DNA from: Macrostomum hystrix
Lineage: Eukaryota > Animalia > Platyhelminthes
Length of the DNA stretch: 64,000 nt
Direction of reading: 5' to 3'
Assembly: GCA_950097015.1 (NCBI GenBank)
Contig: CATNEN010000024.1
Span: forward strand, 3,658,001 to 3,722,000
In this document: positions 6,124 through 64,000 of the stretch, piece by piece
Layout: each line of letters begins with the position of its first letter
Numbering within the stretch: position 1 is the first letter of the stretch
The notes under the pieces: generated by a model
The model's database searches: none
What the model was told of the DNA's origin: nothing
What the model saw: only the letters and a program-made list of their open reading frames with translations
Made by a program: the position numbers and the translations under genes

Positions 6124-18979
<12,856 letters not shown>

Positions 18980-22419: not shown

Positions 22420-23024
22420 TAATTACGGTTGACTGCTTTTCACTGACCTTAATTAGTTGTTTATTTTAGAGAACTCAAAGTCCCCTCTGATTTGACAAGT
22501 TTTCTAGCTAGGCATTGACATTTGAACTGACAAAATCAAAAGAGAAAATATTGGATTTTACATTCCGCGATGGGGGCTACTATTTTTAGACTGCTCTGGC
22601 TTGACACCCGCGAGATATCGAGTGACTCGTTTCGTTCGCACCTAATGAAGCTGGGCCGCGTGAGAATTCTTGAGCACACACTGAGGAGATCTAACTATGT
22701 CTCGCGGGAGTTTTCGGGACACAGCTATAACCACCCACGCAGTGTCAGCAAGTATAGTCGAGGTTCTGTTGAGTTTCAAGCCTGTGAGAATAGTGCTAAT
22801 AGTACTCGCACAGATCTGAGCTGGGCGCAGTTCTAATTGACTGCGAAAAAATAACGATTGGCTGACTCTGAGAGCTACCAACTGTAAATCAATCAAAGTC
22901 ACCTACAACCATTGCGGTGATATATCAAGCCTCCCTACAGGAGCAGTGAGTTCGCTTCTCGCGTTCTCTTTAAATCTGCGCCTAATTAATATTAGAGATT
23001 CGAGTCGCTTAGCAACCGGTTACT

Positions 23025-24297
23025 ATGCGGGCTCCGTTGATCTTTCTGGCCAGCTGTGCTCTCCTGCTGATTGCTGCGCACCTGTGCAGCGCAGCGCCTG
23101 AAACTGTTGACAGCGACAAGATTAGCGCTGAGAGGCGGTCGGCTTTCAGCTTTCGTAAGTTATTGTTACTCCCCTGGTCCTTTATCTAGTACACACTCTT
23201 GATTTCAGCTCGATATTTTTTACACTTTTTGGCCACTAGGAATTTCTCCTGATCCTCTAGCCAATTTTCTTTGGTCTTGCAGACAGAAGCATGGGTCCTC
23301 TACACACTCCCTTGGTTATCTTAGCACTCTTCTGGTCCTCTAGACATTCCCCTGGTCCTCTAGACACTCCCTTTGTTATCTAGACACTCCCTTGGTTATC
23401 TAGACACTCCCTTTGTTATCTATAGGCACCCCTTGGTTATCTAGGCACTCCTTGGTTATCTAGACACTCCCTTGGTTATCTAGGCACCCCTTGGTTATCT
23501 AGACACTCCCTTGGTTATCTAGGCACCCCTTGGTTATCTAGGCACCACTTGGTTATCTAGGCACCCCTTGGTTATCTAGACACTCCCTTTGTTATCTAGA
23601 CACTCCCTTTGTTATCTAGGCACCCCTTGGTTATCTAGACACCCTTTGTTATCTAGAGTCCTAGACACTCCCTTTGTTATCTAGGCACCCCTTGGTTATC
23701 TAGACACTCCCTTTGTTATCTAGACACTCCCTTTGTTATCTAGGCACCCCTTGGTTATCTAGACACCCTTTGTTATCTAGAGTCCTAGACACTCCCTTTG
23801 TTATCTAGGCACCCCTTGGTTATCTAGGCACCCCTTGGTTATCTAGGCACCCCTTTGTTATCTAGGCACCCCTTGGTTATCTAGGCACCCCTTGGTTATC
23901 TAGGCACCCCTTGGTTATCTAGACACTCCCTTGGTTATCTAGACACTCCCTTGGTTATCTAGGCACCCCTTGGTTATCTAGGCACTCCCTTGGTTATCTA
24001 GACACTCCCTTGGTCCTTTAGACACTCCGTTGGTCCTCTAGACACTCCCTTGGTCCTCTGGTCCTCTAGATCCCTAGTCACCTTACATTTTCGCTTCTAT
24101 TATAATTCGTAAAAGTTTAACAGCAAAAATGCAGCTACATTCCACTCGCTAAAATTCGTAACCCTGCAGACAAGTACTACGAGCCGCTGATGCTCTATTG
24201 CACCCGGCACTGCCGCAAACAGCGCGGCAGTGGCTGCTACGGCTTCTATAAGCACGGCTGGCACGGCTCTAAGTGTGTGTGCCTGTGTCCCAATTGA
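23025..24297 (+). CDS. Two-exon secreted Cys-rich cationic prepropeptide (defensin/mytilin-like antimicrobial peptide candidate), 85 aa
   Basis: Exon 1 23025-23154 (MRAPLIFLASCALLLIAAHLCSAAPETVDSDKISAERRSAFSF, donor C|GTAAGT). Exon 2 24170-24297 (acceptor CTGCAG|, HKYYEPLMLYCTRHCRKQRGSGCYGFYKHGWHGSKCVCLCPN*). Phase 1 on both sides. AATAAA at 24348-24353. Confidence 0.82.
23270..24070. repeat. 20-21-bp minisatellite filling the intron of the Cys-rich peptide gene
   Basis: Tandem CTAGACACTCCCTTGGTTAT units. Confidence 0.92.
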
Positions 24298-24679
24298 GTG
24301 TTTGAGTCCATTCTGAAGGCTGATCGAATCACTTATTATAGTAAAACAATAAACTTTCGGGACTGCAAACATTTTTTCAAATTGGCGCGCTGCTGCTATG
24401 GTCACCTGTCTGCATAATTTACTTCGACAGTGCAATCCATACAAACTGGCCGATGAGATAAATAAAACCTATGGACCTCTATTATGTACACCTATAAATG
24501 TGTCAGGTTTTAATCATTTTCAATCAATTATTTATTTGCAGTGGCTATCATTTAGGGTGCCTAACCTCTAGAGGACACAAATCTAGGCAGAGATCAGAAG
24601 ACAGAGCGCAGAAATAAGGCTTGTGGGCTTGTCGTGTAAGTCAGGGCAGATGTACATACGTGTGTAGGTGTGTGCATGT

Positions 24680-25325
24680 GTTCAGTGTCTACTCCATCCT
24701 TCAGTGTCTACTCTATCCTTCAGTGTCTACTCCATCCTTCAGTGTCTACTCTATCCTTCAGTGTCTACTCCATGCTTCAGTGTCTACTCTATCCTTCAGT
24801 ATCTACTCTCCTTCAGTGTCTACTCCATCCTTCAGTGTTTGTCTACTCCATCCTTCAGTGTCTGTCTACTCCATCCTTCAGTGTCTACTCCATCCTTCAG
24901 TGTCTACTCCATCCTTCAGTGTCTACTCCATAATTCATCAGTGTCTACTTAATCCTTCAGTGTCTACTCCATCCTTCAGTGTTTGTCTACTCCATCCTTC
25001 AGTGTCTGTCTACTCCATCCTTCAGTGTCTACTTCATCCTTCAGTGTCTACTCCATCCTTCAGTGTCTACTCCATCCTTCAGTGTCTACTCCATCCTTCA
25101 GTGTCTACTCCATCCTTCAGTGTTTGTCTACTCCATCCTTCAGTGTCTGTCTACTCCATCCTTCAGTGTCTACTTAATCCTTCAGTGTCTACTCCATCCT
25201 TCAGTGTTTGTCTACTCCATCCTTCAGTGTCTGTCTACTCCATCCTTCAGTGTCTGTCTACTCCATCATTCATCAGTGTCTACTCCATCTTTCAGTGTCT
25301 ACTCCATCCTTCATTGTCTACTTTA
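24680..25325. repeat. 19-bp minisatellite (with +4-bp variants)
   Basis: Tandem TCTACTCCATCCTTCAGTG units. Confidence 0.92.
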
Positions 25326-25919
25326 CTGAAACATCTTCTAAGGCCTACATTATATTTAAGTGTCTATTCCAGTTCTGATGTACATCATTTACAAGTATAA
25401 TTTTAAATAAAATATGAAGATTTATGACAATTTCACGCATGACTGACTGATCTAACAAACGCAAACTAACAACCTGGCCGATTTCATGCTTAACGACAGT
25501 ACCTTGGCGTGCCCTTTAAGTTTCAAAGAAGTGTTGACTGAAAGTGAAACTGCATCGAAATATGGACTAGAACTACGAGTTGGTCAATTCAGTATTCAGC
25601 ATTAAATTTAAAACCTAAGCTAACTCATATTGACTAAAACTTAGAAAATATTTTGGATCAAATTGAAAATATATGCAATAAATTCAAGTCTGAATCCGAG
25701 GTTTCCTACTACGATTTTAGCGAGTAGTAAGTCAGGCATTCGAAGTCTATTTTTGAGCTCTAGATATTTATTTCACTTTTATCTTCAAATATTATAAGCC
25801 GCTTTTGCACAACATCGTAATTACGTAATAACAAAAGCCATGACAATTTTTATTTAAAACGGCATCTCCAGAACATGAGGGAAATCGCAGAACAAAAAGA
25901 GGTAATTGATAAAACAATT

Positions 25920-26460
25920 GAGAGAGAGGCTGAGAGAGGAGAGGGAGGCTGAGAGAGGAGAGGGAGGCTGAGAGAGGAGAGGGAGGCTGAGAGAGGAGAG
26001 GGAGGCTGAGAGAGGAGAGGGAGGCTGAGAGAGGAGAGGGAGGCTGAGAGAGGAGAGGGAGGCTGAGAGGAGAGGGAGGCTGAGAGAGGAGAGGGAGGCT
26101 GAGAGAGGAGAGGGAGGCTGATAGGAGAGGGAGGCTGAGAGGAGAGGGAGGCTGAGAGAGGAGAGGGAGGCTGAGAGAGGAGAGGGAGGCTGAGAGAGGA
26201 GAGGGAGGCTGAGAGAGGAGAGGGAGGCTGAGAGGAGAGGGAGGCTGAGAGAGGAGAGGGAGGCTGAGAGAGGAGAGGGAGGCTGAGAGAGGAGAGGGAG
26301 GCTGAGAGAGGAGAGGGAGGCTGAGAGAGGAGAGGGAGGGTGAGAGAGGAGAGGGAGGCTGAGAGAGGAGAGGGAGGCTGAGAGGAGAGGGAGGCTGAGA
26401 GAGGAGAGGGAGGCTGAGAGGAGAGGGAGGCTGAGAGAGGAGAGGGAGGTGCAGAGAGGA
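25920..26460. repeat. Purine-rich 19/17-bp minisatellite just 3' of GGCT
   Basis: Tandem GAGAGAGGAGAGGGAGGCT units. Confidence 0.93.
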
Positions 26461-26520
26461 GAGGGGGGTTGAGAGAGGAGCAGAGGATCACAGATATCTA
26501 GCCTGATTGACTACTTAAGT

Positions 26521-27171
26521 TCAGCGGCCCAGACATTTCAGAAAGTCGACTTGGCAGGGCGGCACGCCTTCAAGAGTCGCCGAGCACAGTTGTAAAACTT
26601 CGTCATATTTTTCGCACCTTCCAGTGTAGCCGTTGTGCTCTCGCTGGCGCAGGGCGTTGACGTAGTCGACTGGCAGGCCAGACTGTACCGCGCCGCGCAG
26701 GATGACGTCGAGATAGTAGGGCGATGGCGGCATTGGCTTGAAGCGCACCATTCGATAGCTGCGGCACTGATGCGAGCCGTCAGCTAATTCAACGGTTACG
26801 CTGATTCGCTCGTAGATTCCTTGTTGAACGCCCTCCTGATTGTCTAGCGATTCGGCGTCTCGATCAGACATCGACCAGACGGCACCATAGACAACAGGTG
26901 GCGGCGCCTGGCTATTGTCACTGCCGCCAGTTGTTGCTGATGCTGCAACTAAAGTGGCGGCGCCACCGTGCCAGGTGCGCTGCCGGTTGTTACCGGTGGA
27001 CTTAGCCGACTCAGTCAGGTAGTGATGCGGATCAGCGAACTCCAGCCGATAGTCGGATAGTCGGCCGGTGGCCACGAACTCGGCTGACGGATTGGCCAAC
27101 CGCAGGCGCTCGCGCAGCAGATTGCTGCCATAGCCAAAGTAGAGAAAATGGCCAGGTTTGATCAGAGGCAT
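26521..27171 (-). CDS. GGCT: Gamma-glutamylcyclotransferase, single exon, 216 aa
   Basis: FLYFGYGSNLLRERL..NPSA, WHGG.AT, VYGAVW...LDNQEGV, CRSY and PPSPYY..VI..GA...GLP align by eye with the GGCT family. Confidence 0.92.
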   Translation of the reverse strand: MPLIKPGHFLYFGYGSNLLRERLRLANPSAEFVATGRLSDYRLEFADPHHYLTESAKSTGNNRQRTWHGGAATLVAASATTGGSDNSQAPPPVVYGAVWSMSDRDAESLDNQEGVQQGIYERISVTVELADGSHQCRSYRMVRFKPMPPSPYYLDVILRGAVQSGLPVDYVNALRQREHNGYTGRCEKYDEVLQLCSATLEGVPPCQVDFLKCLGR

Positions 27172-33700: not shown

Positions 33701-36700
33701 GGTTTTGAAGCTTCAAAAACACCACAGATTAATAGGGATTTGAAGCTTCAAAAACACCCCAGATTAATAGGGCTTTGAAGCTTCAAAAACACCCCAGATT
33801 AATAGAACCAGCTTTAAAAACATCGCAGATTAATCGGGTTTTGAAGCTTAAAAAACACCCCAGATAAATAGGGCTTTGAAGCTTCAAAAACACCACAGAT
33901 TAATAGGGATTTTAAGATTCAAAAACACCCCAGATTAATAGGGCTTTGAAGCTTCAAAAACACCCCAGATTAATAGAACCAGCTTTAAAAACATCGCAGA
34001 TTAATCGGGTTTTGAAGCTTAAAAAACACCCCAGATAAATAGGGCTTTGAAGCTTCAAAAACACCACAGATTAATAGGGATTTTAAGATTCAAAAACACC
34101 CCAGATTAATAGAACCAGCTTTAAAAACATCGCAGATTAATAGGGTTTTGAAGCTTTAAAAACACCACAGATTAATAGGGATTTTAAGATTCAAAAACAC
34201 CCCAGATTAATAGGGCTTTGAAGCTTCAATTACACCCCAGATTAATCGGGTTTTGAAGCTTCAAAAACACCCCAGATTAATAGGGATTTGAAGCTTCAAA
34301 AACACCCCAGATTAATAGAACCAGCTTTAAAAACATCGCAGATTAATAGGGTTTTGAAGCTTCAAAAACACCCCAGATTAATCGGGTTTTGAAGCTTCAA
34401 AAACACCCCAGATTAATAGGGTTTTGAAGCTTCAAAAACACCCCAGATTAATCGGGTTTTGAAGCTTCAAAAACACCCCAGATTAATAGGGATTTGAAGC
34501 TTCAAAAACACCCCAGATTAATAGAACCAGCTTTAAAAACATCGCAGATTAATAGGGTTTTGAAGCTTCAAAAACAACCCATATTAATAGGGATTTGAAG
34601 CTTCAAAAACACCCCAGATTAATCGGGTTTCATAAGCTTCAAAAACACCCCAGATTAATAGAACCAGCTTTAAAAACATCGCAGATTAATAGGGTTTTGA
34701 AGCTTCAAAAACACCCCAGATTAATAGGGTTTTGAAGCTTTAAAAACACCCCAGATTAATAGAACCAGCTTTAAAAACATCGCAGATTAATAGGGTTTTG
34801 AAGCTTCAAAAACACCCCAGATTAATAGGGTTTTGAAGCTTCAAAAACACCCCAGATTAATCGGGTTTTGAAGCTTCAAAAACACCCCAGATTAATAGGG
34901 ATTTGAAGCTTCAAAAACACCCCAGATTAATAGAACCAGCTTTAAAAACATCGCAGATTAATAGGGTTTTGAAGCTTCAAAAACAACCCATATTAATAGG
35001 GATTTGAAGCTTCAAAAACACCCCAGATTAATAGAACCAGCTTTAAAAACATCGCAGATTAATAGGGATTTGAAGCTTCAAAAACACCCCAGATTAATCG
35101 GGTTTCATAAGCTTCAAAAACACAGTTGATGGGATTTTGTAAGAAGACATACACTCACAAAGCTATGCAGCAGCGGTGATTGTACAGCGCCGATAAAAAA
35201 TAAGAATCAGCAGAAGCCAATTACGAAAACAGTCACAAAGAAGATTGACAGAGAACCATGGACCCATTCAGTGGCGCCCATTTAATCAGTGCCATGCTTA
35301 CTAAAATGCGATGCAGGCATTTGAGAATATTAAATAAATACTAATTAGAATGCACTGAGCTCGGGCAATTAAATGACAGTTGAAGACACTGAGTCCTTGC
35401 AGAAGGTAATTATCAAAATTGCTTCGAAAGCGTCGCTCAAAATATAGAGGGCTCGCTGGCAGAACAATGCATGCAGTAGCTCTGCCAAAACTGAGCCCAA
35501 AGGCTCAAGAGATCATTGCTGGCTCTTGTTTTTTGCTTTTTCTGGGACAAAAGAATACTCACATTCCTTCTATTGTTTGAGCCTCCTCCTGTGGCTGATT
35601 TTCAGCCCAATTAATCTTAATTGGTTTATTTTAGTTTGACAGAATTTTTTGTAATTAACTTTTAACAAGTTTCAATTTTTTTAATTGCTTCTGACTAATT
35701 AATTGGTCATTTAGTTAAATTCATCATTTCGCCTAGCAGACACCACAATCTTAGAACACCCCAAACACTATCATTGGGACACCCCAAACACTCTTATCTA
35801 TCAGTAGGACACCCCAAACACTCTTATCTATCGGTAGGACACCCCAAACACTCTTATCTATCGGTAGGACACCCCAGACACTCTTATCTATCACTAGGAC
35901 ACCCCAAACACTCTTATCTATCAGTAGGACACCCCAGACACTCTTATCTATCAGTAGGACACCCCAAACACTCTTATCTATCACTAGGACACCCCAGACA
36001 CTCTTATCTATCACTAGGACACCCCAAACACTCTTATCTATCAGTAGGACACCCCAGACACTCTTATCTATCAGTAGGACACCCCAAACACTCTTATCTA
36101 TCACTAGGACACCCCAGACACTCTTATCTATCAGTAGGACACCCCAAACACTCTTATCTATCACTAGGACGCCCCAGACACTCTTATCTATCAGTAGGAC
36201 ACCCCAAACACTCTAATCTATCACTAGGACACCCCAAACACTCTAATCTATCACTAGGACACCCCAAACACTCTTATCTATCACTAGGACACCCCAGACA
36301 CTCTTATCTATCACTAGGACACCCCAAACACTCTTATCTATCAGTAGGACACCCCAGACACTCTTATCTATCAGTAGGACACCCCAAACACTCTTATCTA
36401 TCACTAGGACACCCCAGACACTCTTATCTATCACTAGGACACCCCAAACACTCTTATCTATCAGTAGGACACCCCAGACACTCTTATCTATCAGTAGGAC
36501 ACCCCAAACACTCTTATCTATCACTAGGACACCCCAGACACTCTTATCTATCAGTAGGACACCCCAAACACTCTTATCTATCACTAGGACGCCCCAGACA
36601 CTCTTATCTATCAGTAGGACACCCCAAACACTCTTATCTATCAGTAGGACACCCCAGACACTCGTATCTATCAGTAGGACACCCCAAACACTCTAATCTA

Positions 36701-38071
36701 TCACTAGGACACCCCAGACACTCTTATCTATCACTAGGACACCCCAAACACTCTTATCTATCAGTAGGACACCCCAGACACTCTTATCTATCAGTAGGAC
36801 ACCCCAAACACTCTTATCTATCAGTAGGACACCCCAAACACTCTTATCTATCACTAGGACACCCCAGACACTCTTATCTATCAGTAGGACACCCCAAACA
36901 CTCTAATCTATCACTAGGACACCCCAAACACTCTTATCTATCAGTAGGACACCCCAAATCCCCCAAAAATGCTTCCAGACTCAAATGGCGTCCTGAAGGA
37001 GATGATCTTTCCCAAGGCCCTGGATTTGGACCGGCCGAAGCGAGCCCGGACAACTTTCTCCAGCGATCAGCTAATTCGCCTAGAAGAGGCCTTCAGGCGC
37101 AACCACTACATGATCGGCAGAGACAGGAACGACTTGGCCAAGACTCTCAGACTGTCCGAGACGCAAGTACGCAATGAATCACAATGAAACACCTGAATTA
37201 CACAATGACTCACCTACATTACACAATGAAACACCTGGATTACTCAATGACTCACCTGTAGTTCACAATGACTCGCCTGAGTTACAAAATGGCTCACACG
37301 AATCACAATGAGTCACATGAATCACAATGACTCACATGAATCACAATGACTCACATGAATCACAATGACTCACATGAATCACAATGACTCACATGAATCA
37401 CAATGACTCACATGAATCACAATGACTCACATGAATCACAATGACTCACATGAATCACAATGACTCACATGAATCACAATGACTCACATGAATCACACAA
37501 TGACTCACATGAATCACAATGACTCACATGAATCACAATGACTCACATGAATCACAATGACTCACATGAATCACAATGACTCAAAGCTCTGCATGTCCAA
37601 CCCTCTCCTGTTCCCTGAGTCCAGGTGAAAGTTTGGTTTCAAAATCGGCGCACGAAATTCAAGCGCGATCACGGCGTCCAGGGCTCGAGTCCGGACGAAG
37701 CTGCGGCCGAGGCCTTCGACCAGCCGGACAGTCCGATGGCTGGACGAAGGCCTCCTGAGCTGATGACGCTACCGCCAGCAGTCAAACCGCCGGCTTCTGT
37801 TGGTCATCGTCACCCAGCAGCTGACACAACTGACGCTGCCGCGGCTGCGGCTGCCGCTGCCGCGTACATGTATGGAATGCCGTGGTACCGACCTTCGGGA
37901 TCGATTCCCGGAGGAGACTGCGGCAACGTGCCGTCGTTTCTCGTGCCCCAACCGCCAGCTCTTAATCAGCAGCCGTATCAGCAGTTTGAGTCAATGAGTC
38001 AATTCCAGCCGAGTTTCGATCTGCAGTCGCCTTACAGTCAGATGGCCGGCATATTTAAGCCCAGAGAATGA
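30605..38071 (+). CDS. vax: Vax (ventral anterior homeobox) transcription factor
   Basis: Exons 30605-30815, 36979-37166 and 37625-38071 join in phase. They give [38 protein letters not shown]...LSETQVKVWFQNRRTKFKRD, the Vax-diagnostic pre-homeodomain extension plus homeodomain. PolyQ N-terminus, polyA stretch in the C-terminus. Confidence 0.9.
31765..31832 (+). mobile_element. tRNA(Lys)-like SINE head or tRNA pseudogene in vax intron 1
   Basis: GCCTAAGTGGTTGGAGCTTCGGACTTTAGACTGAGAGGTCCTGAGTTCGAATTCC has A-box-like and B-box-like motifs with broken stems. Confidence 0.45.
31915..35125. repeat. ~3.2-kb 35-bp minisatellite in vax intron 1
   Basis: About 90 units of AAAAACACCCCAGATTAATAGGGTTTTGAAGCTTC, with a recurrent shorter variant GATTAATAGAACCAGCTTTAAAAACATCGCA. 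Confidence 0.95.
35750..36960. repeat. 30-bp minisatellite abutting vax exon 2
   Basis: About 40 units of GGACACCCCAAACACTCTTATCTATCAGTA. Confidence 0.95.
37170..37585. repeat. 19-bp minisatellite in vax intron 2
   Basis: Tandem AATCACAATGACTCACATG units, degenerate at the 5' end. Confidence 0.92.
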
Positions 38072-46390: not shown

Positions 46391-46959
46391 TTTCAATTAT
46401 GTTGTATATTAATCTCAATGTCTCTTTGTTCTTCAGGTCATCTAAAGGTTTGGGTTCAGCTACAATTGATACAACTTTATTTACTGAGGTGTTCTCAGTG
46501 AATGTGAGTTGGTGCTGGCCCTAGCCAGGTGCATTGTCTCCCAGAGAAAAAGTGCCGCTTTTTCTTGAAGAATTTCTTATTGAAAACGTTAAAATAAATA
46601 TTTTAAAGTTTTATTGATTTCTAAAGCCAGTCCAAAGCTTTAAGTTGTCTTCTGCGAGTTAAAAGACAGAATTTGATAGCCGTGTCATATTCTCTCTTAA
46701 GACAGCTACTTTTAGATGGTCGAATAAAGTTTGTACACTTTTTTAATTTGAATCCCGATGGAGATCCTAGAAAATGCCAGAGCTCATTTTTTTTCCACCG
46801 AGCTTTTCTTAGCGCAATTTTTTTTGCAGGCGGCTTAAAAATTGCCGAGTTGAGGAGGAAATAAAAAAGGAATAAAACTAACATTAACGGGGCTCATGAA
46901 AACGCTCCTATAAACTGTGCGCTAATTGCTGTGAACCCCATTTTTAAGCTATCTATAAC

Positions 46960-48010
46960 TTCTCTATCTGTCTTTGCCTATCTGCTTCTCGTCATCCCTT
47001 TCTCTCAGTCTACTTCTCTACCTCTCCTTCTCTCAGTCTACTTCTCTACCTCTCCTCCTCTCAGTCTACTTCTCTACCTCTCCTCCTCTCAGTCTACTTC
47101 TCTACCTCTCCTCCTCTCAGTCTACTTCTCTACCTCTCCTTCTCTCAGTCTACTTCTCTACCTCTCCTCCTCTCAGTCTACTTCTCTACCTCTCCTCCTC
47201 TCAGTCTACTTCTCTACCTCTCCTTCTCTACGTCTACTTCTCTACCTCTCCTTCTCTACGTCTACTTCTCTACCTCTCTTTCTCTACGTCTACTTCTCTA
47301 GCTTCCATTCTCTCAGTCTACTTCTCTACCTCTCCTTCTCTACGTCTAATTCTCTACCTCTCCTTCTCTACGTCTACTTCTCTAGCTCCCATTCTCTCAC
47401 TCTACTTCTCTACCTCTTTTCTCTCACTCTACTTCTTTACCTCCCATTCTCTCAGTCTACTTATCTACCTCCCATTCTCTCAGTCTACTTCTCTACCTCC
47501 CTTTCCCTCAGTCTACTTCTCTACCTCCTTTTCTCTCAGTCTACTTCTCTACCTCCTTTTCTCTCAGTCTACTTCTCTACCTCTCCTTCTCTACGTCTAC
47601 TTCTCTACCTCTCCTTCTCTACGTCTACTTCTCTACCTCTCTTTCTCTACGTCTACTTCTCTAGCTTCCATTCTCTCAGTCTACTTCTCTACCTCTCCTT
47701 CTCTACGTCTAATTCTCTACCTCTCCTTCTCTACGTCTACTTCTCTACCTCTCTTTCTCTACGTCTACTTCTCTACCTCTCTTTCTCTACGTCTACTTCT
47801 CTAGCTCCCATTCTCTCACTCTACTTCTCTACCTCTTTTCTCTCACTCTACTTCTTTACCTCCCATTCTCTCAGTCTACTTATCTACCTCCCATTCTCTC
47901 AGTCTACTTCTCTACCTCCCTTTCCCTCAGTCTACTTCTCTACCTCCTTTTCTCTCAGTCTACTTCTCTACCTCCTTTTCTCTCAGTCTACTTATCTACC
48001 TCTCTCCTCT
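46960..48010. repeat. Pyrimidine-rich minisatellite with block duplication
   Basis: Recurring CTCAGTCTACTTCTCTACCTCTC. Explains ORFs 46931-48163 and 46974-47804. Confidence 0.9.
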
Positions 48011-48424
48011 TCTCGCATGGTATCACGAAGTGAGTGCGTGACAGGCACTCAAAAGCCAACTAGCTTGCAGCCGAGCTCGCAATCCCCGCTCATCCTCTCC
48101 CACATCCTTCCCATTCCTTTCGCCCGTATTTTTTTTCTCCGTCCCGGAAGAAGGAGAGTTTAGCGACGATGACGCCTGGAGTTTGACATCACGGAGATGC
48201 GGGCAGGCCGGCAGCAGTTCTAGTCAGCAATTGTCTGATACTGGGATCATATTTCCACACGCTCTCTTCCCTCAAACCAGGTGTTGCTTGTTCGCGAGAA
48301 CACAACATTTTCCAGATAATTATGCGAAAACTTTCTGTGAGAGTTCTTTTTCTCGAAGCCAAACAATTGCTCGATATCACGAATTCTATTTCCAATACTT
48401 GTTTGACAACCGAGGCATATTCTC

Positions 48425-49070
48425 TTAGACAGGTGTGTTTCCTTTTATACAGGTGTCATGTCTGTTAGACAGGTGTGATGCCTGTTAGACAGGTGTGTTG
48501 CCTGTTAGACAGGTGTGTTTCCTTTTATACAGGTGTGTTGCCTGTTAGACAGGTGTGATGCCTGTTAGACAGGTGTGTTGCCTGTTAGACAGGTGTGTTG
48601 CCTGTTAGACAGGTGTGTTTCCTTTTATACAGGTGTGTTGCCTGTTAGACAGGTGTGTTGCCTGTTAGACAGGTGTGATGCCTGTTAGACAGGTGTGTTG
48701 CCTGTTAGACAGGTGTGATGCCTGTTAGACAGGTGTGTTGCCTGTTAGACAGGTGTGATGCCTGTTAGACAGGTGTGTTGCCTGTTAGACAGGTGTGATG
48801 CCTGTTAGACAGGTGTGTTGCCTGTTAGACAGGTGTGTTGCCTGTTAGACAGGTGTGTTTCCTTTTATACAAGTGTGTTGCCTGTTAGACAGGTGTGTTT
48901 CCTTTTATACAGGTGTGTTGCCTGTTAGACAGGTGTGTTTCCTGTTAGACAGGTGTGTTGCCTGTTAGACAGGTGTGTTGCCTGTTAGACAGGTGTGTTG
49001 CCTGTCAGACAGGTGTGTTGCCTGTTAGACAGGTGTGCATTCTGTTAGGCTGGTGTGATCCTGTTAGACA
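48425..49070. repeat. 20-bp minisatellite
   Basis: Tandem CCTGTTAGACAGGTGTGTTG units. Confidence 0.93.
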
Positions 49071-52700: not shown

Positions 52701-55700
52701 ATGGAATTGCGGTCAACTGTAGACTCTGTGGGACGGCGGCAACATCAGAAGATCTATGGAATTGGGGTTAACTGTAGACTCTGTGGGACGGCGGCAACAT
52801 CAAAAGATCTATGGAATTGGGGTTAACTGTAGACTCTGTGGGACGGCGGCAGCATCAAAAGATCTATAGAATTGCGGTCAACTGTAGACTCTGTGGGACG
52901 GCGGCAACATCAAAAGATCTATGGAATTGGGGTTAACTGTAGACTCTGTGGGACGACAGCGATACATAAGAACAAAGGAAAGAATCTGTGAGAATGTGGC
53001 AGCAACAGCAATCACGACAGTCATATAGACAATTCCGAGGAAACAATGGAATGTACTTTTCGCTATCTAAACTTCCTGTTAGTGTATTAATCGAGGAATC
53101 CTTGTGAAAGCAATTTTAATGTGATACCGTTGTCACGTTGTCAAAACAATTTAATCAAACTCATGTAAAGAAGGTAAAGAAGGTACATCATATCTAAGAG
53201 TTTAGAAAGTCAACAGTACTCTCGATGCACTACTATTGGTAATAACGCATCGTGTTAAATTAAATAACAGAAGCCAAAGCTGCGTTATGCTGCGATAATC
53301 ATAATCTAAATCAGTAAAAAACAAAATTATTAATTGATCATCCATGCTTTCCTAGTTGCCATAGCAACAGCACACTCACCGTCGCGCAATCGCCGATTGC
53401 CCTTGGCGCTGGACGGCCGAGGAATTCGGTTCGGACTGCCTTCATCCTCCTTCGAAGCCCTCTGCCCGGAGTCCGTTGCCTCGTTGCTTGAGCCCTGTGG
53501 AAGAAGAGGCAATAGACTGTGATTTTCTGATTAGCGAGTTTTACAGACCGATTGACAGTCAGATCTCCTCGCTTTGACTTTAGTGTGTCGAAAACCTGTA
53601 CAGAAAATAACTTTTTTTCGGTCTAGAATCAGTACAGAATTAAACAATTTCTTGTCTAAAAGCTGTACAGAATTTACCGATTCTCTCTAACAGCTGTACA
53701 GAATTAACACATTCTCTCTCTAACATATGTACAGAATTTACCAATTCTCTCTCTAACATCTGTGCAGAATTAACCAATTCTCTCTAACAGCAGTACAGAA
53801 TTAACCAATTCTCTCTAACATCTCTACAGAATTTACCAATTCTCTCTAACAGCAGTACAGAATTAACCAATTCTCTCTAACATCTCTACAGAATTTACCA
53901 ATTCTCTCTAACAGCAGTACAGAATTAACCAATTCTCTCTCTAACATCTGTACAGAATTAACCAATTCTCTCTCTAACATCTGTACAGAATTAACCAATT
54001 CTCTCTCTAACATCTGTACAGAATTAACCAATTCTCTCTAACATCAGTACAGAATTAACCAATTCTCTCTAACATCAGTACAGAATTAACCAATTCTCTC
54101 TAACATCAGTACAGAATTAACCAATTCTCTCTAACAGCAGTACAGAATTAACCAATTCTCTCTCTAACATCTGTACAGAATTAACCAATTCTCTCTAACA
54201 TCAGTACAGAATTAACCAATTCTCTCTAACATCTGCACAGAATTAACCAATTCTCTCTCTAACATCTGTACAGAATTAACCAATTCTCTCTAACATCAGT
54301 ACAGAATTAACCAATTCTCTCTAACAGCAGTACAGAATTAACCAATTCTCTCTAACAGCAGTACAGAGTTAACCAATTCTCTCTCTAACATCTGTGCAGA
54401 ATTAACCAATTCTCTCTCTAACATCTGTACAGAATTAACCAATTCTCTCTAACATCTGTACAGAATTAACCAATTCTCTCTCTAACATCTGTACAGAATT
54501 TACCAATTCTCTCTAACAGCAGTACAGAATTAACCAATTCTCTCTCTAACATCTGTACAGAATTAACCAATTCTCTCTCTAACATCTGTACAGAATTAAC
54601 CAATTCTCTCTAACATCAGTACAGAATTAACCAATTCTCTCTAACATCAGTACAGAATTAACCAATTCTCTCTAACATCTGTACAGAATTAACCAATTCT
54701 CTCTCTAACATCTGTACAGAATTAACCAATTCTCTCTCTAACATCTGTACAGAATTAACCAATTCTCTCTAACATCAGTACAGAATTAACCAATTCTCTC
54801 TAACATCTGCACAGAATTAACCAATTCTCTCTCTAACATCTGTACAGAATTAACCAATTCTCTCTAACATCAGTACAGAATTAACCAATTCTCTCTAACA
54901 GCAGTACAGAATTAACCAATTCTCTCTAACAGCAGTACAGAGTTAACCAATTCTCTCTCTAACATCTGTGCAGAATTAACCAATTCTCTCTCTAACATCT
55001 GTACAGAATTAACCAATTCTCTCTCTAACATCTGTACAGAATTAACCAATTCTCTCTAACATCAGTACAGAATTAACCAATTCTCTCTAACATCTGTACA
55101 GAATTAACCAATTCTCTCTCTAACATCTGTACAGAATTAACCAATTCTCTCTCTAACATCTGTACAGAATTAACCAATTCTCTCTAACATCAGTACAGAA
55201 TTAACCAATTCTCTCTAACATCTGCACAGAATTAACCAATTCTCTCTCTAACATCTGTACAGAATTAACCAATTCTCTCTAACATCAGTACAGAATTAAC
55301 CAATTCTCTCTAACAGCAGTACAGAATTAACCAATTCTCTCTAACAGCAGTACAGAGTTAACCAATTCTCTCTCTAACATCTGTGCAGAATTAACCAATT
55401 CTCTCTCTAACATCTGTACAGAATTAACCAATTCTCTCTCTAACATCTGTGCAGAATTAACCAATTCTCTCTCTAACATCAGTACAGAATTAACCAATTC
55501 TCTCTCTAACATCTGTACAGAATTAACCAATTCTCTCTAACATCAGTACAGAATTAACCAATTCTCTCTCTAACATCTGTACAGAATTAACCAATTCTCT
55601 CTAACATCAGTACAGAATTAACCAATTCTCTCTAACATCTGCACAGAATTAACCAATTCTCTCTCTAACATCTGTACAGAATTAACCAATTCTCTCTAAC

Positions 55701-58700
55701 ATCAGTACAGAATTAACCAATTCTCTCTAACAGCAGTACAGAATTAACCAATTCTCTCTAACAGCAGTACAGAGTTAACCAATTCTCTCTCTAACATCTG
55801 TGCAGAATTAACCAATTCTCTCTCTAACATCTGTACAGAATTAACCAATTCTCTCTCTAACATCTGTACAGAATAAACCAATTCTCTCTCTAACATCAGT
55901 ACAGAATTAACCAATTCTCTCTAACATCTGCACAGAATTAACCAATTCTCTCTCTAACATCTGTACAGAATTAACCAATTCTCTCTAACATCAGTACAGA
56001 ATTAACCAATTCTCTCTAACATCTGTACAGAATTAACCAATTCTCTCTCTAACATCTGTAAGAATTAACCAATTCTCTCTCTAACATCTGTACAGAATTA
56101 ACCAATTCTCTCTCTAACATCTGTACAGAATTAACCAATTCTCTCTAACAGCAGAACAGAATTAACCAATTCTCTCTAACAGCAGTACAGAGTTAACCAA
56201 TTCTCTCTCTAACATCTGTGCAGAATTAACCAATTCTCTCTCTAACATCTGTACAGAATTAACCAATTCTCTCTCTAACATCTGTACAGAATTAACCAAT
56301 TCTCTCTAACATCAGTACAGAATTAACCAATTCTCTCTAACATCAGTACAGAATTAACCAATTCTCTCTAACATCTGTACAGAATTAACCAATTCTCTCT
56401 CTAACATCTGTAAGAATTAACCAATTCTCTCTCTAACATCTGTACAGAATTAACCAATTCTCTCTAACATCAGTACAGAATTAACCAATTCTCTCTAACA
56501 TCAGTACAGAATTAACCAATTCTCTCTAACATCAGTACAGAATTAACCAATTCTCTCTCTAACATCTGTACAGAATTAACCAATTCTCTCTAACATCAGT
56601 ACAGAATTAACCAATTCTCTCTCTAACATCTGTACAGAATTAACCAATTCTCTCTAACATCTGCACAGAATTAACCAATTCTCTCTCTAACATCTGTACA
56701 GAATTAACCAATTCTCTCTAACATCAGTACAGAATTAACCAATTCTCTCTAACAGCAGTACAGAGTTAACCAATTCTCTCTCTAACATCTGTACAGAATT
56801 AACCAATTCTCTCTCTAACATCTGTACAGAATTAACCAATTCTCTCTAACATCTGTACAGAATTAACCAATTCTCTCTCTAACATCTGTACAGAATTAAC
56901 CAATTCTCTCTCTAACATCTGTACAGAATAAACCAATTCTCTCTCTAACATCAGTACAGAATTAACCAATTCTCTCTAACATCTGCACAGAATTAACCAA
57001 TTCTCTCTCTAACATCTGTACAGAATTAACCAATTCTCTCTAACATCAGTACAGAATTAACCAATTCTCTCTAACATCTGTACAGAATTAACCAATTCTC
57101 TCTCTAACATCTGTAAGAATTAACCAATTCTCTCTCTAACATCTGTACAGAATTAACCAATTCTCTCTCTAACATCTGTACAGAATTAACCAATTCTCTC
57201 TAACAGCAGAACAGAATTAACCAATTCTCTCTAACAGCAGTACAGAGTTAACCAATTCTCTCTCTAACATCTGTGCAGAATTAACCAATTCTCTCTCTAA
57301 CATCTGTACAGAATTAACCAATTCTCTCTCTAACATCTGTACAGAATTAACCAATTCTCTCTAACATCAGTACAGAATTAACCAATTCTCTCTAACATCA
57401 GTACAGAATTAACCAATTCTCTCTAACATCTGTACAGAATTAACCAATTCTCTCTCTAACATCTGTAAGAATTAACCAATTCTCTCTCTAACATCTGTAC
57501 AGAATTAACCAATTCTCTCTAACATCAGTACAGAATTAACCAATTCTCTCTAACATCAGTACAGAATTAACCAATTCTCTCTAACATCAGTACAGAATTA
57601 ACCAATTCTCTCTCTAACATCTGTACAGAATTAACCAATTCTCTCTAACATCAGTACAGAATTAACCAATTCTCTCTCTAACATCTGTACAGAATTAACC
57701 AATTCTCTCTAACATCTGCACAGAATTAACCAATTCTCTCTCTAACATCTGTACAGAATTAACCAATTCTCTCTAACATCAGTACAGAATTAACCAATTC
57801 TCTCTAACAGCAGTACAGAATTAACCAATTCTCTCTAACAGCAGTACAGAGTTAACCAATTCTCTCTCTAACATCTGTGCAGAATTAACCAATTCTCTCT
57901 CTAACATCTGTACAGAATTAACCAATTCTCTCTAACATCAGTACAGAATTAACCAATTCTCTCTCTAACATCTGTACAGAATTAACCAATTCTCTCTAAC
58001 ATCAGTACAGAATTAACCAATTCTCTCTAACATCTGCACAGAATTAACCAATTCTCTCTCTAACATCTGTACAGAATTAACCAATTCTCTCTAACATCAG
58101 TACAGAATTAACCAATTCTCTCTAACAGCATGTACAGAATTAACCAATTCTCTCTAACAGCAGTACAGAGTTAACCAATTCTCTCTCTAACATCTGTGCA
58201 GAATTAACCAATTCTCTCTCTAACATCTGTACAGAATTAACCAATTCTCTCTCTAACATCTGTACAGAATTAAACCAATTCTCTCTCTAACATCATGTAC
58301 AGAATTAACCAATTCTCTCTAACATCTGCACAGAATTAACCAATTCTCTCTCTAACATCTGTACAGAATTAACCAATTCTCTCTAACATCAGTACAGAAT
58401 TAACCAATTCTCTCTAACATCTGTACAGAATTAACCAATTCTCTCTAACATCTGTACAGAATTAACCAATTCTCTCTAACATCTGTACAGAATTAACCAA
58501 TTCTCTCTAACATCTGTACAGAATTAACCAATTCTCTCTCTAACATCTGTAAGAATTAACCAATTCTCTCTCTAACATCTGTACAGAATTAACCAATTCT
58601 CTCTCTAACATCTGTACAGAATTAACCAATTCTCTCTAACAGCAGAACAGAATTAACCAATTCTCTCTAACAGCAGTACAGAGTTAACCAATTCTCTCTC

Positions 58701-61700
58701 TAACATCTGTGCAGAATTAACCAATTCTCTCTCTAACATCTGTACAGAATTAACCAATTCTCTCTCTAACATCTGTACAGAATTAACCAATTCTCTCTAA
58801 CATCAGTACAGAATTAACCAATTCTCTCTAACATCAGTACAGAATTAACCAATTCTCTCTAACATCTGTACAGAATTAACCAATTCTCTCTCTAACATCT
58901 GTAAGAATTAACCAATTCTCTCTCTAACATCTGTACAGAATTAACCAATTCTCTCTAACATCAGTACAGAATTAACCAATTCTCTCTAACATCAGTACAG
59001 AATTAACCAATTCTCTCTAACAGCAGTACAGAATTAACCAATTCTCTCTCTAACATCAGTACAGAATTAACCAATTCTCTCTCTAACATCTGTACAGAAT
59101 TAACCAATTCTCTCTAACATCAGTACAGAATTAACCAATTCTCTCTCTAACATCTGTACAGAATTAACCAATTCTCTCTAACATCTGCACAGAATTAACC
59201 AATTCTCTCTCTAACATCTGTACAGAATTAACCAATTCTCTCTAACATCAGTACAGAATTAACCAATTCTCTCTAACAGCAGTACAGAGTTAACCAATTC
59301 TCTCTCTAACATCTGTGCAGAATTAACCAATTCTCTCTCTAACATCTGTACAGAATTAACCAATTCTCTCTCTAACATCTGTACAGAATTAACCAATTCT
59401 CTCTCTAACATCTGTACAGAATTAACCAATTCTCTCTCTAACATCTGTACAGAATTAACCAATTCTCTCTCTAACATCTGTACAGAATTAACCAATTCTC
59501 TCTCTAACATCTGTACAGAATTAACCAATTCTCTCTCTAACATCTGTACAGAATTAACCAATTCTCTCTCTAACATCTGTACAGAATTAACCAATTCTCT
59601 CTCTAACATCTGTACAGAATTAACCAATTCTCTCTAACATCTGTACAGAATTAACCAATTCTCTCTCTAACATCTGTACAGAATTAACCAATTCTCTCTC
59701 TAACATCTGTACAGAATTAAACCAATTCTCTCTCTAACATCTGTACAGAATTAACCAATTCTCTCTAACATCTGCACAGAATTAACCAATTCTCTCTCTA
59801 ACATCTGTACAGAATTAACCAATTCTCTCTTAACATCTGTACAGAATTAACCAATTCTCTCTCTAACATCTGTACAGAATTAACCAATTCTCTCTCTAAC
59901 ATCTGTACAGAATTAACCAATTCTCTCTCTAACATCTGTACAGAATTAACCAATTCTCTCTCTAACATCTGTACAGAATTAACCAATTCTCTCTCTAACA
60001 TCTGTACAGAATTAACCAATTCTCTCTCTAACATCTGTACAGAATTAACCAATTCTCTCTCTAACATCTGTACAGAATTAACCAATTCTCTCTCTAACAT
60101 CTGTACAGAATTAACCAATTCTCTCTCTAACATCTGTACAGAATTAACCAATTCTCTCTCTAACATCTGTACAGAATTAACCAATTCTCTCTCTAACATC
60201 TGTACAGAATTAACCAATTCTCTCTCTAACATCTGTACAGAATTAACCAATTCTCTCTAACATCTGCACAGAATTAACCAATTCTCTCTCTAACATCTGT
60301 ACAGAATTAACCAATTCTCTCTTTAACATCTGTACAGAATTAACCAATTCTCTCTCTAACATCTGTACAGAATTAACCAATTCTCTCTCTAACATCTGTA
60401 CAGAATTAACCAATTCTCTCTCTAACATCTGTACAGAATTAACCAATTCTCTCTCTAACATCTGTACAGAATTAACCAATTCTCTCTCTAACATCTGTAC
60501 AGAATTAACCAATTCTCTCTCTAACATCTGTACAGAATTAACCAATTCTCTCTCTAACATCTGTACAGAATTAACCAATTCTCTCTCTAACATCTGTACA
60601 GAATTAACCAATTCTCTCTCTAACATCTGTACAGAATTAACCAATTCTCTCTCTAACATCTGTACAGAATTAACCAATTCTCTCTCTAACATCTGTACAG
60701 AATTAACCAATTCTCTCTCTAACATCTGTACAGAATTAACCAATTCTCTCTCTAACATCTGTACAGAATTAACCAATTCTCTCTCTAACATCTGTACAGA
60801 ATTAACCAATTCTCTCTCTAACATCTGTACAGAATTAACCAATTCTCTCTCTAACATCTGTACAGAATTAACCAATTCTCTCTCTAACATCTGTACAGAA
60901 TTAACCAATTCTCTCTCTAACATCTGTACAGAATTAACCAATTCTCTCTCTAACATCTGCTACAGAATTAACCAATTCTCTCTCTAACATCTGTACAGAA
61001 TTAACCAATTCTCTCTCTAACATCTGTACAGAATTAACCAATTCTCTCTCTAACATCTGTACAGAATTAACCAATTCTCTCTCTAACATCTGTACAGAAT
61101 TAACCAATTCTCTCTCTAACATCTGTACAGAATTAACCAATTCTCTCTCTAACATCTGTACAGAATTAACCAATTCTCTCTCTAACATCTGTACAGAATT
61201 AACCAATTCTCTCTCTAACATCTGTACAGAATTAACCAATTCTCTCTCTAACATCTGTACAGAATTAACCAATTCTCTCTCTAACATCTGTACAGAATTA
61301 ACCAATTCTCTCTCTAACATCTGTACAGAATTAACCAATTCTCTCTCTAACATCTGTACAGAATAAACAATTCTCTCTCTAACATCTGTACAGAATTAAC
61401 TAATTCTCTCTCTAACATCTGTACAGAATTAACCAATTCTCTCTCTAACATCTGTACAGAATTAACCAATTCTCTCTTTAACATCTGTACAGAATTAACC
61501 AATTCTCTCTCTAACATCTGTACAGAATTAACCAATTCTCTCTCTAACATCTGTACAGAATTAACCAATTCTCTCTCTAACATCTGTACAGAATTAACCA
61601 ATTCTTTTTATACAAAAATGCTATTGATTGAAATACATTATTTGTTTTGTCGAGAATTGAGGAAATCTAAAAAAAGAAAAATTAGTAAATAGTTTTTTGG

Positions 61701-64000
61701 TGGCGATCACGCCTAACAAACGATTAAACAATATTTTCACAACAATGAGATTGGTTATCTATTGAAGGCATGCACTATAAAGACAATTATTGCTTTTTTC
61801 ATTCAATGCACACATGCAAGTTTTGATTGTATCAAACTAAATATAATTTATTTCATTGTATAGTTTTATACTACTTGAAGTAGGGAAAGTTGCACGATGG
61901 ATCGAGAAACAAGAGTTTTATTTTTTTAAACTAAGAAAAGTTCTGGCGTCCTTCCTACTTTAGTAGTCTAACGGTTGATAGTAAGAAGCTAGAAATGAAG
62001 TAAACAGGAAGATCAGTATGATAATAAGCATTATCTGCGTTCTATTGGCATTTTACCGGAGCTGCGGAACCCCGACGAGAGCCAGTCTGGGATGTGGCGC
62101 CGCCCATCTGGATGTCATCATCGTCGTTGTCATGGCTACCCGGCTGATACGAAGGTAATCGTTATAGTTGGCGGAACTTTAGTTATCTTATCTTATCTTA
62201 TCTTTAGTCACTTATCTCAGAATGGAATTGGGCTTTTTTACCATTTAATATCGATCCTTAACACCTAAACCAATAAACTATGTCTGTTCAGACGAATAAA
62301 ATCTCCGCATTTTGCATTCACAACATTTACGACCTTGAGGGTCAACCTCTAAGGCACAGTGAGAGTGTACACCGCCTGACGATGAGAAAAAGTCAGGGCA
62401 GATTGATGTACACACCTGTGTGAGCGTGTGCCTACGTACAGTATCGGTGTGAGTGTGTGCTCAGGAGTCAGCGAAATGGGCAGAATTGCCTCCTCTTGCA
62501 GAAGTGTCACCAAATGATTTGTGAGTGACCACAACCCTCCTGCAAATAATAATTATTATTACTAACTATTGCTAATATCATTAAATTGTTTCTAAATAAT
62601 CAGAATCTGTGTAAAGTAGCTCGTAAATCAATTTAGCCATAGTTTTCTGTGCCTATCGAAAGCAATTGTCATGCAACAATCAAATTATCGCCATCAAATT
62701 ATCAACAATTACAGGGAAATATGTGAGAGGTGACAAATTGGTACTCGTAAATTTCATCTGTAAGCTTATAGCCTGAGTGACAGTGCAAAGCGATGCAGCA
62801 AGCTGACAAACATATTTGGACACGACACGCCTCCTCTTGATGTCTATCTACTGTGCTAGACTATGAATGGTTACCTTAGCAACCGAGGCGGCGGGCGCCG
62901 CCACCGGTGCCTCTTTGCCTGCCCTTCCCGGCGGTCTGTCAGCAGTTGGCTTTGGCTTGTCACGCTGCTTTTAAAGATTATTAACGAAGTGGGAAATTTC
63001 TAAGGGTTGTATTGTGAAGCAAGATTTGTCAGAAAGGAAGCTAACCTGAGCATCGGAGGTGCGCGACTTTTTATCGTCTCCTCGAACTCGGGTTCGCTCT
63101 TTGTCGCCGTCTTTGTCACTGCGGCCTCTGTCTTTTTCTTTTCCTCTGCTTTCCCGGTCTTTGTCCTTCTCCTTCTCCCTCTCTCGGTCTTTGTCCCTGT
63201 CCTTCTCTCTGTCTTTGCCCCTCTCTTTCTCTCCTTCGCGTTCTTTTTCTTTCTCTCTTTCCCGGTCTTTGTCCTTCTCATTCTCCCGGTCTTTGTCTCT
63301 CTCCTTTTCTCGATCTCTACTTTTTTCTTTGCCGCCTTCGTCCCGGTCACGCTTTTTATCCCGGCTGCCGTCGTCTTCCCGACGCCGCTCCTTTGAGCTG
63401 TGCTCGCGCTCGTCCTTCCGGCGCTCCTTGCTGTCCTCGCGCGGCTGCTTCTTGGAGCCACCGGCCGACGCCGCCGCCGGGCCCTCGCCATTGAGGACGC
63501 GTTTAACGAATTCGGCATTGTTAACCTGATGAAATATTGGAAAAAAAGAAGCGATAAAAATGCACATTGCTACTCACAGTAGGCTCATTCGCGTGCTTTC
63601 TTGTGTCCAAGAAGCACAAGGGGCTAATTCACCCGAGACTACGAGGTGAATTCGTAAATTCTAGAGCAGGGAGAATTTTTTGTTGCGCACCTTCTGAATC
63701 AAGAATTGAGTCGCCACCTATACAAAACTTCGAGATCCTTATCCTTTTAACTAAATCCCACCTTTTTGCCGAGTGCAGCGGCCAGATCTTGCAGAAATAG
63801 GTTGGTCTTGTCGGCCTCTTTGCCGGCAACAATTGCGGAGGGCTTGACTGCCACCTCTTTGCCATTAACCAGGCCTGGATTGCATTACGAGAGGGCAGGT
63901 GTTTTTTATGATTCTGTGGCAGAAATCAATGCACTATAATCGAGACTTTGGCGTTATCAAAGCTTACCAACCAGACGAATCACCTTGTCCAGGTAGGCGA
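49763..64000 (-). CDS. TRAF3IP1: Intraflagellar transport protein 54 (TRAF3IP1/MIP-T3), 5' end beyond the window
   Basis: Minus-strand exons >64000-63968, 63874-63762, 63525-63046, 62967-62875, 62143-62057, 53494-53380, 51171-51123, 50718-50191 (acceptor could lie further upstream) and 49919-49763, all phase-consistent. CH-domain end (AVKPSAIVAGKEADKTNLFLQ...VKRVL), charged R/K/E/D region, DDDQFVVE, HGGLVK, NPLGKIIDYVQED and a C-terminal coiled coil (VKANIVRNDERI). Confidence 0.92.
49925..50105. repeat. 20-bp minisatellite in the last IFT54 intron
   Basis: Tandem GGGCTTCAGTTGTTCAGGGA units. Confidence 0.88.
51402..51472 (-). mobile_element. tRNA(Val)-like SINE head in an IFT54 intron
   Basis: A box TGGCAGAGCGG (51456-51466), GTTCGCCTCTCACACCAAGGTCCC resembling the tRNA-Val anticodon arm, and a degenerate B box AGCTCAATTCC. 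Confidence 0.5.
52385..52955. repeat. 55-bp minisatellite in an IFT54 intron
   Basis: CTGTGGGACGGCGGCAACATC... recurs at 52506, 52561 and onward. About 10 units. Confidence 0.92.
53640..61605. repeat. ~8-kb 31/33-bp satellite filling IFT54 intron 53495-62056
   Basis: Roughly 245 units of AACATCTGTACAGAATTAACCAATTCTCTCT(CT). Explains all the ERELVNSVQML ORFs. Confidence 0.97.

Follow-up and report, generated by a model that had tools for sequence, protein, structure and literature searches.

A spliced Macrostomum hystrix gene for a secreted six-cysteine peptide with a predicted CS-alpha-beta-like fold

The window, i.e. the whole stretch of DNA analyzed here, comprises 64,000 nucleotides of the flatworm Macrostomum hystrix (assembly GCA_950097015.1, contig CATNEN010000024.1, positions 3,658,001 to 3,722,000). 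It contains a two-exon gene for a small, secreted, cysteine-rich peptide, the features of which are listed in Table 1; in contig coordinates the locus spans about 3,680,811-3,682,507. Exon 1 (23025-23154) consists of 43 full codons and one base of the next codon, which the intron splits, and encodes a basic N-terminus, a hydrophobic core ending in CSA, an acidic propiece, the pair RR and the residues SAFSF. The intron starts with GTAAGT and ends with CTGCAG. The split codon c/ac encodes His and is followed by 41 codons and a TGA at 24295-24297, which gives a precursor of 85 residues from both exons and a putative mature peptide of 47 residues. A previous examination of the letters without database searches, hereafter the sequence-only reading, had described the gene as unannotated; this is correct relative to the mechanical ORF track, to which the term is limited.

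Table 1. Features of the gene (window coordinates)
Feature	Position	Strand	Basis
5' UTR, minimum extent	22811..23024	+	X3 contig coverage 22811-23154; X4 contig start 22930
Putative signal peptide, residues 1-23 (MRAP, hydrophobic core, ...CSA)	23025..23093	+	translation
15-residue propiece ending in dibasic RR, net charge -1	23094..23138	+	translation, charge count
Codons 1-5 of the putative mature peptide (SAFSF) with base 1 of the split codon for His; exon 1 ends here	23139..23154	+	
Phase-1 intron, GT..AG, 1015 bases	23155..24169	+	contigs X3, X4; X1 loose end
Minisatellite within the intron, 20-bp unit, ~38 copies; alternatively 39-bp unit	23299..24054	.	TRF
Exon 2 coding: remaining bases of the His codon, then 41 codons with all six Cys, TGA	24170..24297	+	translation
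3' UTR, AATAAA at 24348 and 24461	24298..24507	+	contig ends 24385, 24418, 24487, 24507

Expression and splicing were assessed with assembled contigs of public runs over 22700-24700. A 662-nt contig (run X3, study P2) covers 22811-23154 and 24170-24487, and a 474-nt contig (run X4, study P2) covers 22930-23154 and 24170-24418, both with zero differing letters. The two contigs skip 23155-24169 exactly and thus reproduce the junction 23154/24170 proposed in the sequence-only reading. The contig of run X1 (study P1) begins at 24170 and carries a 17-letter overhang that equals the final bases of exon 1, which brings the support for the junction to three runs of two studies (X3 and X4 by exact skip, X1 by overhang). 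In run X2, a contig reaches through the 3' UTR as far as 24507, and the transcript was assembled in all four of the P2 runs listed. The second AATAAA (24461) is located 26-46 bases upstream of the contig ends at 24487-24507. The kind of run is not recorded as RNA; we infer that the contigs joining both exons derive from RNA, because exon 2 occurs only once in the M. hystrix genome and the gene is not present there in an intron-less form.

A short ORF with no known domain and with both exons below 60 codons could belong to a locus that is transcribed but non-functional, or could be a chance ORF. This explanation is hardly credible in view of the exact splice, of a start codon that is the first ATG of the transcript (none occurs in the 214 transcribed bases 22811-23024 upstream of 23025), of a GC3 of 0.65 in exon 1 and 0.80 in exon 2 against a GC content of 0.46 in the intron, and of the conservation of the frame, the six cysteines and the processing site in a second species. 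The locus is confirmed as a genuine M. hystrix gene with two exons that is both spliced and expressed.

The minisatellite in the intron is private to the locus: a 25-mer taken from its unit has 11 matches in the genome (at most 1 mismatch), each of them inside this intron. A second minisatellite is present at 24681-25322, about 175 bases past the 3' end of the transcript; it has a 19-bp unit (TTCAGTGTCTACTCCATCC, ~32 copies) and yields a spurious ORF of 259 aa at 24621-25400. Further along the window, two adjacent ORFs on the reverse strand (25850-27171) probably represent a neighboring multi-exon gene, the ORF at 26521-27171 matching AIG2_2/GGACT (gamma-glutamyl cyclotransferase-like, E 3.6e-24). 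A 307-aa ORF at 14633-15556 (+) has weak matches to DEAD and Helicase_C (E ~1e-6) and is probably part of a helicase gene or of a mobile element. No Pfam match at E<=0.001 was obtained for the ORFs at 8485-10161 (-, 558 aa), 35774-37177 (+, 467 aa) and 46931-48163 (+, 410 aa). ARAGORN predicted a tRNA-Ser (TGA) of 96 bases at 48638-48733 (+), a length that could accommodate an intron or a long variable arm, and a search of the window against Rfam gave no matches. The region 54001-62000 shows a sustained GC skew of -0.49 to -0.60 at a GC content of 0.32-0.34; the strong negative skew and the low GC content suggest a strand-biased repeat or satellite block.

The M. hystrix assembly Machtx_v2 (220,453,370 bases, 42 contigs), which is the published assembly of the species according to Wiberg et al. 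(2023, PMC10468722), was searched for further copies, with each exon searched separately. The gene is single-copy in this assembly when exon 2 and the M. lignano mature peptide are used as queries, and the search for paralogues named as a check in the sequence-only reading returned this locus only. One further genome match (C30, E 1.95) lacks the cysteine framework and was rejected as a chance match. Scanning the window in six frames for the framework recovered this gene and one low-complexity stretch at about 63100 only. A degenerate DNA pattern of the six cysteines was uninformative: it had 32,651 matches in the whole genome, mostly in CTG/TGC repeats, and its reversed control had 13,557.

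Pfam has no family that matches either exon, the M. lignano precursor or its mature part, even at E<=10, and the Pfam defensin and toxin models (Defensin_2, Gamma-thionin, Toxin_2/3/5, Macin and others) gave no match at E<=10. Searches of PDB sequences returned chance matches only, including those with a profile of the two-species alignment (A1). No candidates came from a word-index search of proteins in which exon 2 (41 aa) and the exon-1 ORF (1-43) were the queries; the length window applied to exon 2 excludes precursors of 85-106 aa. With phmmer, exon 2 was searched against 1.84 billion protein representatives and had one true relative (P0001, E 9.7e-10); P0002 and P0003, which were also returned, are repeat proteins and were rejected as spurious. 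When P0001 was used as the query, copies from M. lignano were the only relatives found.

P0001 is a Macrostomum lignano protein of 106 aa that bears the name 'Secreted protein' (UniRef entry A0A1I8ICZ0), and P0004 (A0A1I8JLN2) is a variant of it that differs in one residue. Both exons match this one protein collinearly: exon 1 aligns to residues 4-53 with 34% identity (E 6e-08) and exon 2 to residues 55-99 with 64% identity (BLASTP, 2e-19 pairwise; 64-72% across searches) and all six cysteines kept. At residue 54 of P0001 the two species share a His. Conservation extends to the end of the signal peptide, AHLCSA(A/V)PE; the RR of M. hystrix aligns with a KR in P0001 so that the dibasic site is kept, and both peptides have a net positive charge. 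Elsewhere in the propiece, both the length and the sequence have diverged. Because the mature part and the cleavage site are conserved and the propiece drifts, the comparison points to selection acting on the released peptide. Like the M. hystrix peptide, the M. lignano orthologue has six cysteines, the CYG, the blocks LMLYCTR and GSKCVCLCP, and the same predicted topology; it differs in a longer propiece, a 5-residue insertion before the third cysteine and a 7-residue C-terminal tail. M. lignano has several near-identical copies, two of them mis-modelled, whereas M. hystrix has a single copy. In the mis-modelled copy P0006 (117 aa), exon 1 is followed and exon 2 then appears to be read out of frame; in P0005 (397 aa), the prepropeptide is embedded in an unrelated 'WSC domain' fusion model. 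P0006 departs from P0001 right after SVFNL, which is the position of the M. hystrix intron, and this suggests that the intron site is conserved between the two species.

Many small secreted proteins of Macrostomum are produced in the prostate and other glands. A secretory or reproductive gland product (seminal fluid, adhesive, rhabdite/mucus or eggshell) with no immune role would also be in line with the assembly of the transcript in all four P2 runs and with the large sets of reproduction-related transcripts that are stressed by Wiberg et al. (2023, PMC10468722). The 64-72% identity to the M. lignano orthologue speaks against such a product, as does the peptide itself: adhesive and structural proteins typically have repeats or stretches of low complexity, and it has none. 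The gland explanation is accorded little probability.

The general architecture reported in the sequence-only reading, i.e. a signal peptide of approximately residues 1-23, an acidic propiece, RR and a cationic mature peptide of 47 residues, is seen in the translation. By the -3/-1 rule we infer cleavage of the signal peptide after residue 23. The cysteines are located at positions 10, 14, 22, 35, 37 and 39 of exon 2, corresponding to C54, C58, C66, C79, C81 and C83 of the precursor; all six fall within exon 2 and reproduce exactly the spacing C-x3-C-x7-C-x12-C-x-C-x-C given previously. Exon 2 has a net charge of +6, 7 aromatic residues and 3 His, the fourth His that had been counted in the mature peptide coming from the split codon. 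A C-Y-G that follows a conserved G-S-G constitutes a CXG gamma-core motif and is invariant in the two-species alignment. In the processing pathway proposed, signal peptidase would remove residues 1-23 of the 85-residue prepropeptide, and furin or a prohormone-convertase-type enzyme would cut after the dibasic site, releasing an aromatic-rich peptide of 47 residues with a net charge of +6.

A precursor of this kind could also be a convertase-cut prohormone, from which a neuropeptide-, hormone- or cytokine-like ligand acting on a receptor would be released. The prohormone architecture with its conserved dibasic site and divergent propiece is consistent with a signalling peptide, and a single copy conserved in two species suits a hormone or ligand at least as well as it suits antimicrobial peptides (AMPs), which are typically fast-evolving and multi-copy. 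The C-terminal ...PGRGRQ tail of the M. lignano peptide could be trimmed or amidated, and another candidate prohormone is present in the same window. However, no Pfam neuropeptide or hormone family matches the peptide, the tail is absent in M. hystrix, so that amidation would not be conserved, and the cationic and aromatic content together with the helix-hairpin models described below are a better fit to defence or to a toxin. A signalling role is considered unlikely.

The fold was predicted with AlphaFold2. The M. hystrix model was computed for exon 2 alone as a single sequence and is therefore without the first six residues of the 47-residue mature peptide (pLDDT 77; helix 3-12, strands 23-29 and 32-38). 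The M. lignano model, which spans that part, was computed for the mature peptide from a three-row alignment that included M. hystrix exon 2 (pLDDT 74; helix 3-24, a short helix in the insertion, strands 34-40 and 43-49). Both models have the same topology, a helix followed by a beta-hairpin. Foldseek against PDB returned nothing at E<=0.001, and a shape search of the ESM Atlas returned unrelated bacterial fragments only. VIA-align against 48,161 PDB representatives placed the nematode peptide ASABF at the top for both models (Z 3.7, rmsd 2.6, 39 residues; Z 3.4, 44 residues). The matches also included the plant defensin AtD90 (Z 3.3), termicin (Z 3.1) and SP11/SCR-type peptides (Z 2.9, 2.7) and, at lower scores, ABF-2 (Z 2.4, 2.6), eurocin (2.6), sugarcane defensin (2.5), a centipede CS-alpha-beta toxin (2.5), plectasin (2.2) and drosomycin (2.0); all Z are below 4, and these matches are interspersed with unrelated helix and hairpin fragments. 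A second look with the same method brought no further matches. The structure prediction named as a check in the sequence-only reading thus gave a helix and a hairpin with CS-alpha-beta peptides as the nearest structural neighbors (best Z 3.1-3.7). That CS-alpha-beta peptides are enriched among the matches shows which arrangement the models have; it is no evidence that the models are correct.

With protein-language-model features the nearest families were the scorpion short toxins (Toxin_5/Toxin_2), at 0.82 and 0.77, scores that are a lead only and lie in the range often reached by shuffled proteins. Together with the sequence motif of a cysteine-stabilised helix, the basic and aromatic surface and the centipede CS-alpha-beta toxin among the structural matches (Z 2.5), they would agree with a toxin-like modulator of channels, similar to the scorpion short toxins and used in defence against predators or in prey handling. 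Apart from the level of those scores, the lack of any toxin match in Pfam counts against such a modulator, and Macrostomum is not known as venomous. A toxin function is considered quite improbable.

CS-alpha-beta peptides can be described by a reference array (Tarr 2016, PMC5116183) in which the cysteine-stabilised helix is made up of C3, C4, C8 and C9, while the bond C2-C6 is needed to complete the fold. The topology that defines the superfamily (Cornet 1995) is predicted by both AlphaFold2 models. Both species have conserved CxxxC and CxC sequence motifs; in the M. hystrix model the DSSP helix ends two residues before the second cysteine. No cysteine occurs between the dibasic site and CxxxC in either species. 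As read from the translations, the canonical third disulfide (C2-C6 of the array) cannot form, because no cysteine precedes the helix; the spare sixth cysteine is the third one of the C-terminal CxCxC. In both models a two-residue turn sets the register of the hairpin and places the third cysteine opposite the sixth. The DSSP strands therefore suggest the pairing C54-C79, C58-C81 and C66-C83. The sequence-only reading had predicted C54-C81, C58-C83 and C66-C79, of which C66-C79 is disfavored by this register. In terms of the array, the framework would combine the helix pair with the C5/7-C10 bond that is 'extra' in eight-cysteine nematode and mollusc peptides, and would omit the canonical third bond. 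The peptide is predicted to be CS-alpha-beta-like and is assigned to no defined family. Of the defensin-like signature named earlier, CxxxC and CxC stand as sequence motifs; the topology is predicted, no sequence match was obtained in Pfam or PDB, and the third disulfide is lacking.

The function preferred here is that of a secreted host-defence effector, antibacterial or antifungal, that would act on the microbial envelope in the manner of CS-alpha-beta peptides. It is put forward tentatively, with a likelihood somewhat short of even, by analogy with those peptides. In the mature peptide, one alpha-helix would pack on a two-stranded beta-hairpin held by three disulfides; the helix CxxxC would be bonded to the CxC of the last strand, and the cysteine of CYG would be bonded across the strands to the remaining cysteine of the CxCxC. 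Once released, the peptide would act on microbial envelopes in the way of ASABF, termicin and the defensins of fungi and plants. The host-defence reading is weakened by the low Z scores, the lack of a Foldseek match and of sequence homology to CS-alpha-beta peptides, and the impossibility of the third disulfide. It is also weakened by the behavior of AMP predictors, which favor any cationic cysteine-rich peptide.

The M. lignano peptide has already been subjected to such predictors. In the survey of flatworm AMP-like peptides by Irvine et al. (2023, PMC10414684), A0A1I8ICZ0 and A0A1I8JLN2 constitute group 181 (file S5), the entry of which lists a signal peptide, one propeptide site and a 58-residue mature peptide starting at SVFNL. 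All 11 of the 11 AMP predictors were positive for this group, and it was dropped at the step 'Same genome', i.e. for its occurrence in one genome only (PMC10414684). The same study notes that protease inhibitors and signalling peptides also score as AMPs, places cysteine-rich candidates outside the tested set, and reports the CS-alpha-beta/defensin class as missing from flatworms (Irvine et al. 2023, PMC10414684). As P0001 and P0004 are the sequences of group 181, the M. hystrix peptide belongs with that group. The family has thus already been flagged computationally in M. lignano, and the present work adds a second species and transcript evidence. The claim of the sequence-only reading that the peptide might define a new AMP family was overstated, since the M. 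lignano orthologue was already present in UniProt and in group 181 (Irvine et al. 2023).

With an orthologue in M. hystrix, the reason for which the M. lignano peptide had been discarded, 'single genome only', no longer applies. If the CS-alpha-beta-like scaffold is correct, the class is present in flatworms and too diverged for homology search. A host-defence role, if true, would make the peptide a concrete candidate for an immune effector in a flatworm genus that is open to genetic work; transgenesis and RNAi are established in M. lignano. Should the peptide be a hormone or a toxin instead, it would still represent a new six-cysteine framework for that scaffold. The most far-reaching interpretation, that the two Macrostomum species harbor the first CS-alpha-beta-type host-defence family of Platyhelminthes, with a reduced, non-canonical disulfide array, is rather doubtful; if it holds, the fold would have escaped homology searches rather than have been lost.

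Among the known systems, ASABF and ABF-2 of nematodes (PDB 2D56, 5IX5) likewise are cationic, secreted peptides with a CxxxC helix and a CxC in the last strand that is followed by a further cysteine. ASABF has 8 cysteines, including the N-terminal cysteine of the canonical third bond, whereas the M. hystrix peptide has 6 and is without that cysteine; the structural alignments of ASABF to the models have 16-18% identity, and there is no match at the sequence level. The insect, fungal and plant defensins termicin (1MM0), plectasin, eurocin, AtD90 and drosomycin resemble the predicted fold in having a helix with antiparallel strands; in sequence, they share with the peptide the motif of a cysteine-stabilised helix and a CXG of the gamma-core type. 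The C1-C4 bond of the defensins (array C2-C6) is absent from the M. hystrix peptide, and its hairpin loop, with 12 residues between the third and fourth cysteines, is longer than in defensins. The scorpion short toxins (Toxin_5, Toxin_2) share the small alpha-beta-beta CS-alpha-beta scaffold with the predicted fold and differ in cysteine count and spacing, with no HMM match to the M. hystrix peptide. The likeness to mussel mytilins noted in the sequence-only reading extends to the C-terminal CxCxC and the cationic character; it did not hold for the cysteines, of which mytilins have 8 in another spacing and the M. hystrix peptide has 6, and no sequence similarity to mytilin was detected. Mytilin (mytilin B, 2EEM) is absent from the structural matches at Z>=2, for which it may lack a representative in the library. 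In mytilin B, a ladder of helix cysteines is bonded to the CxCxC strand, an arrangement that resembles the pairing suggested here by the hairpin register.
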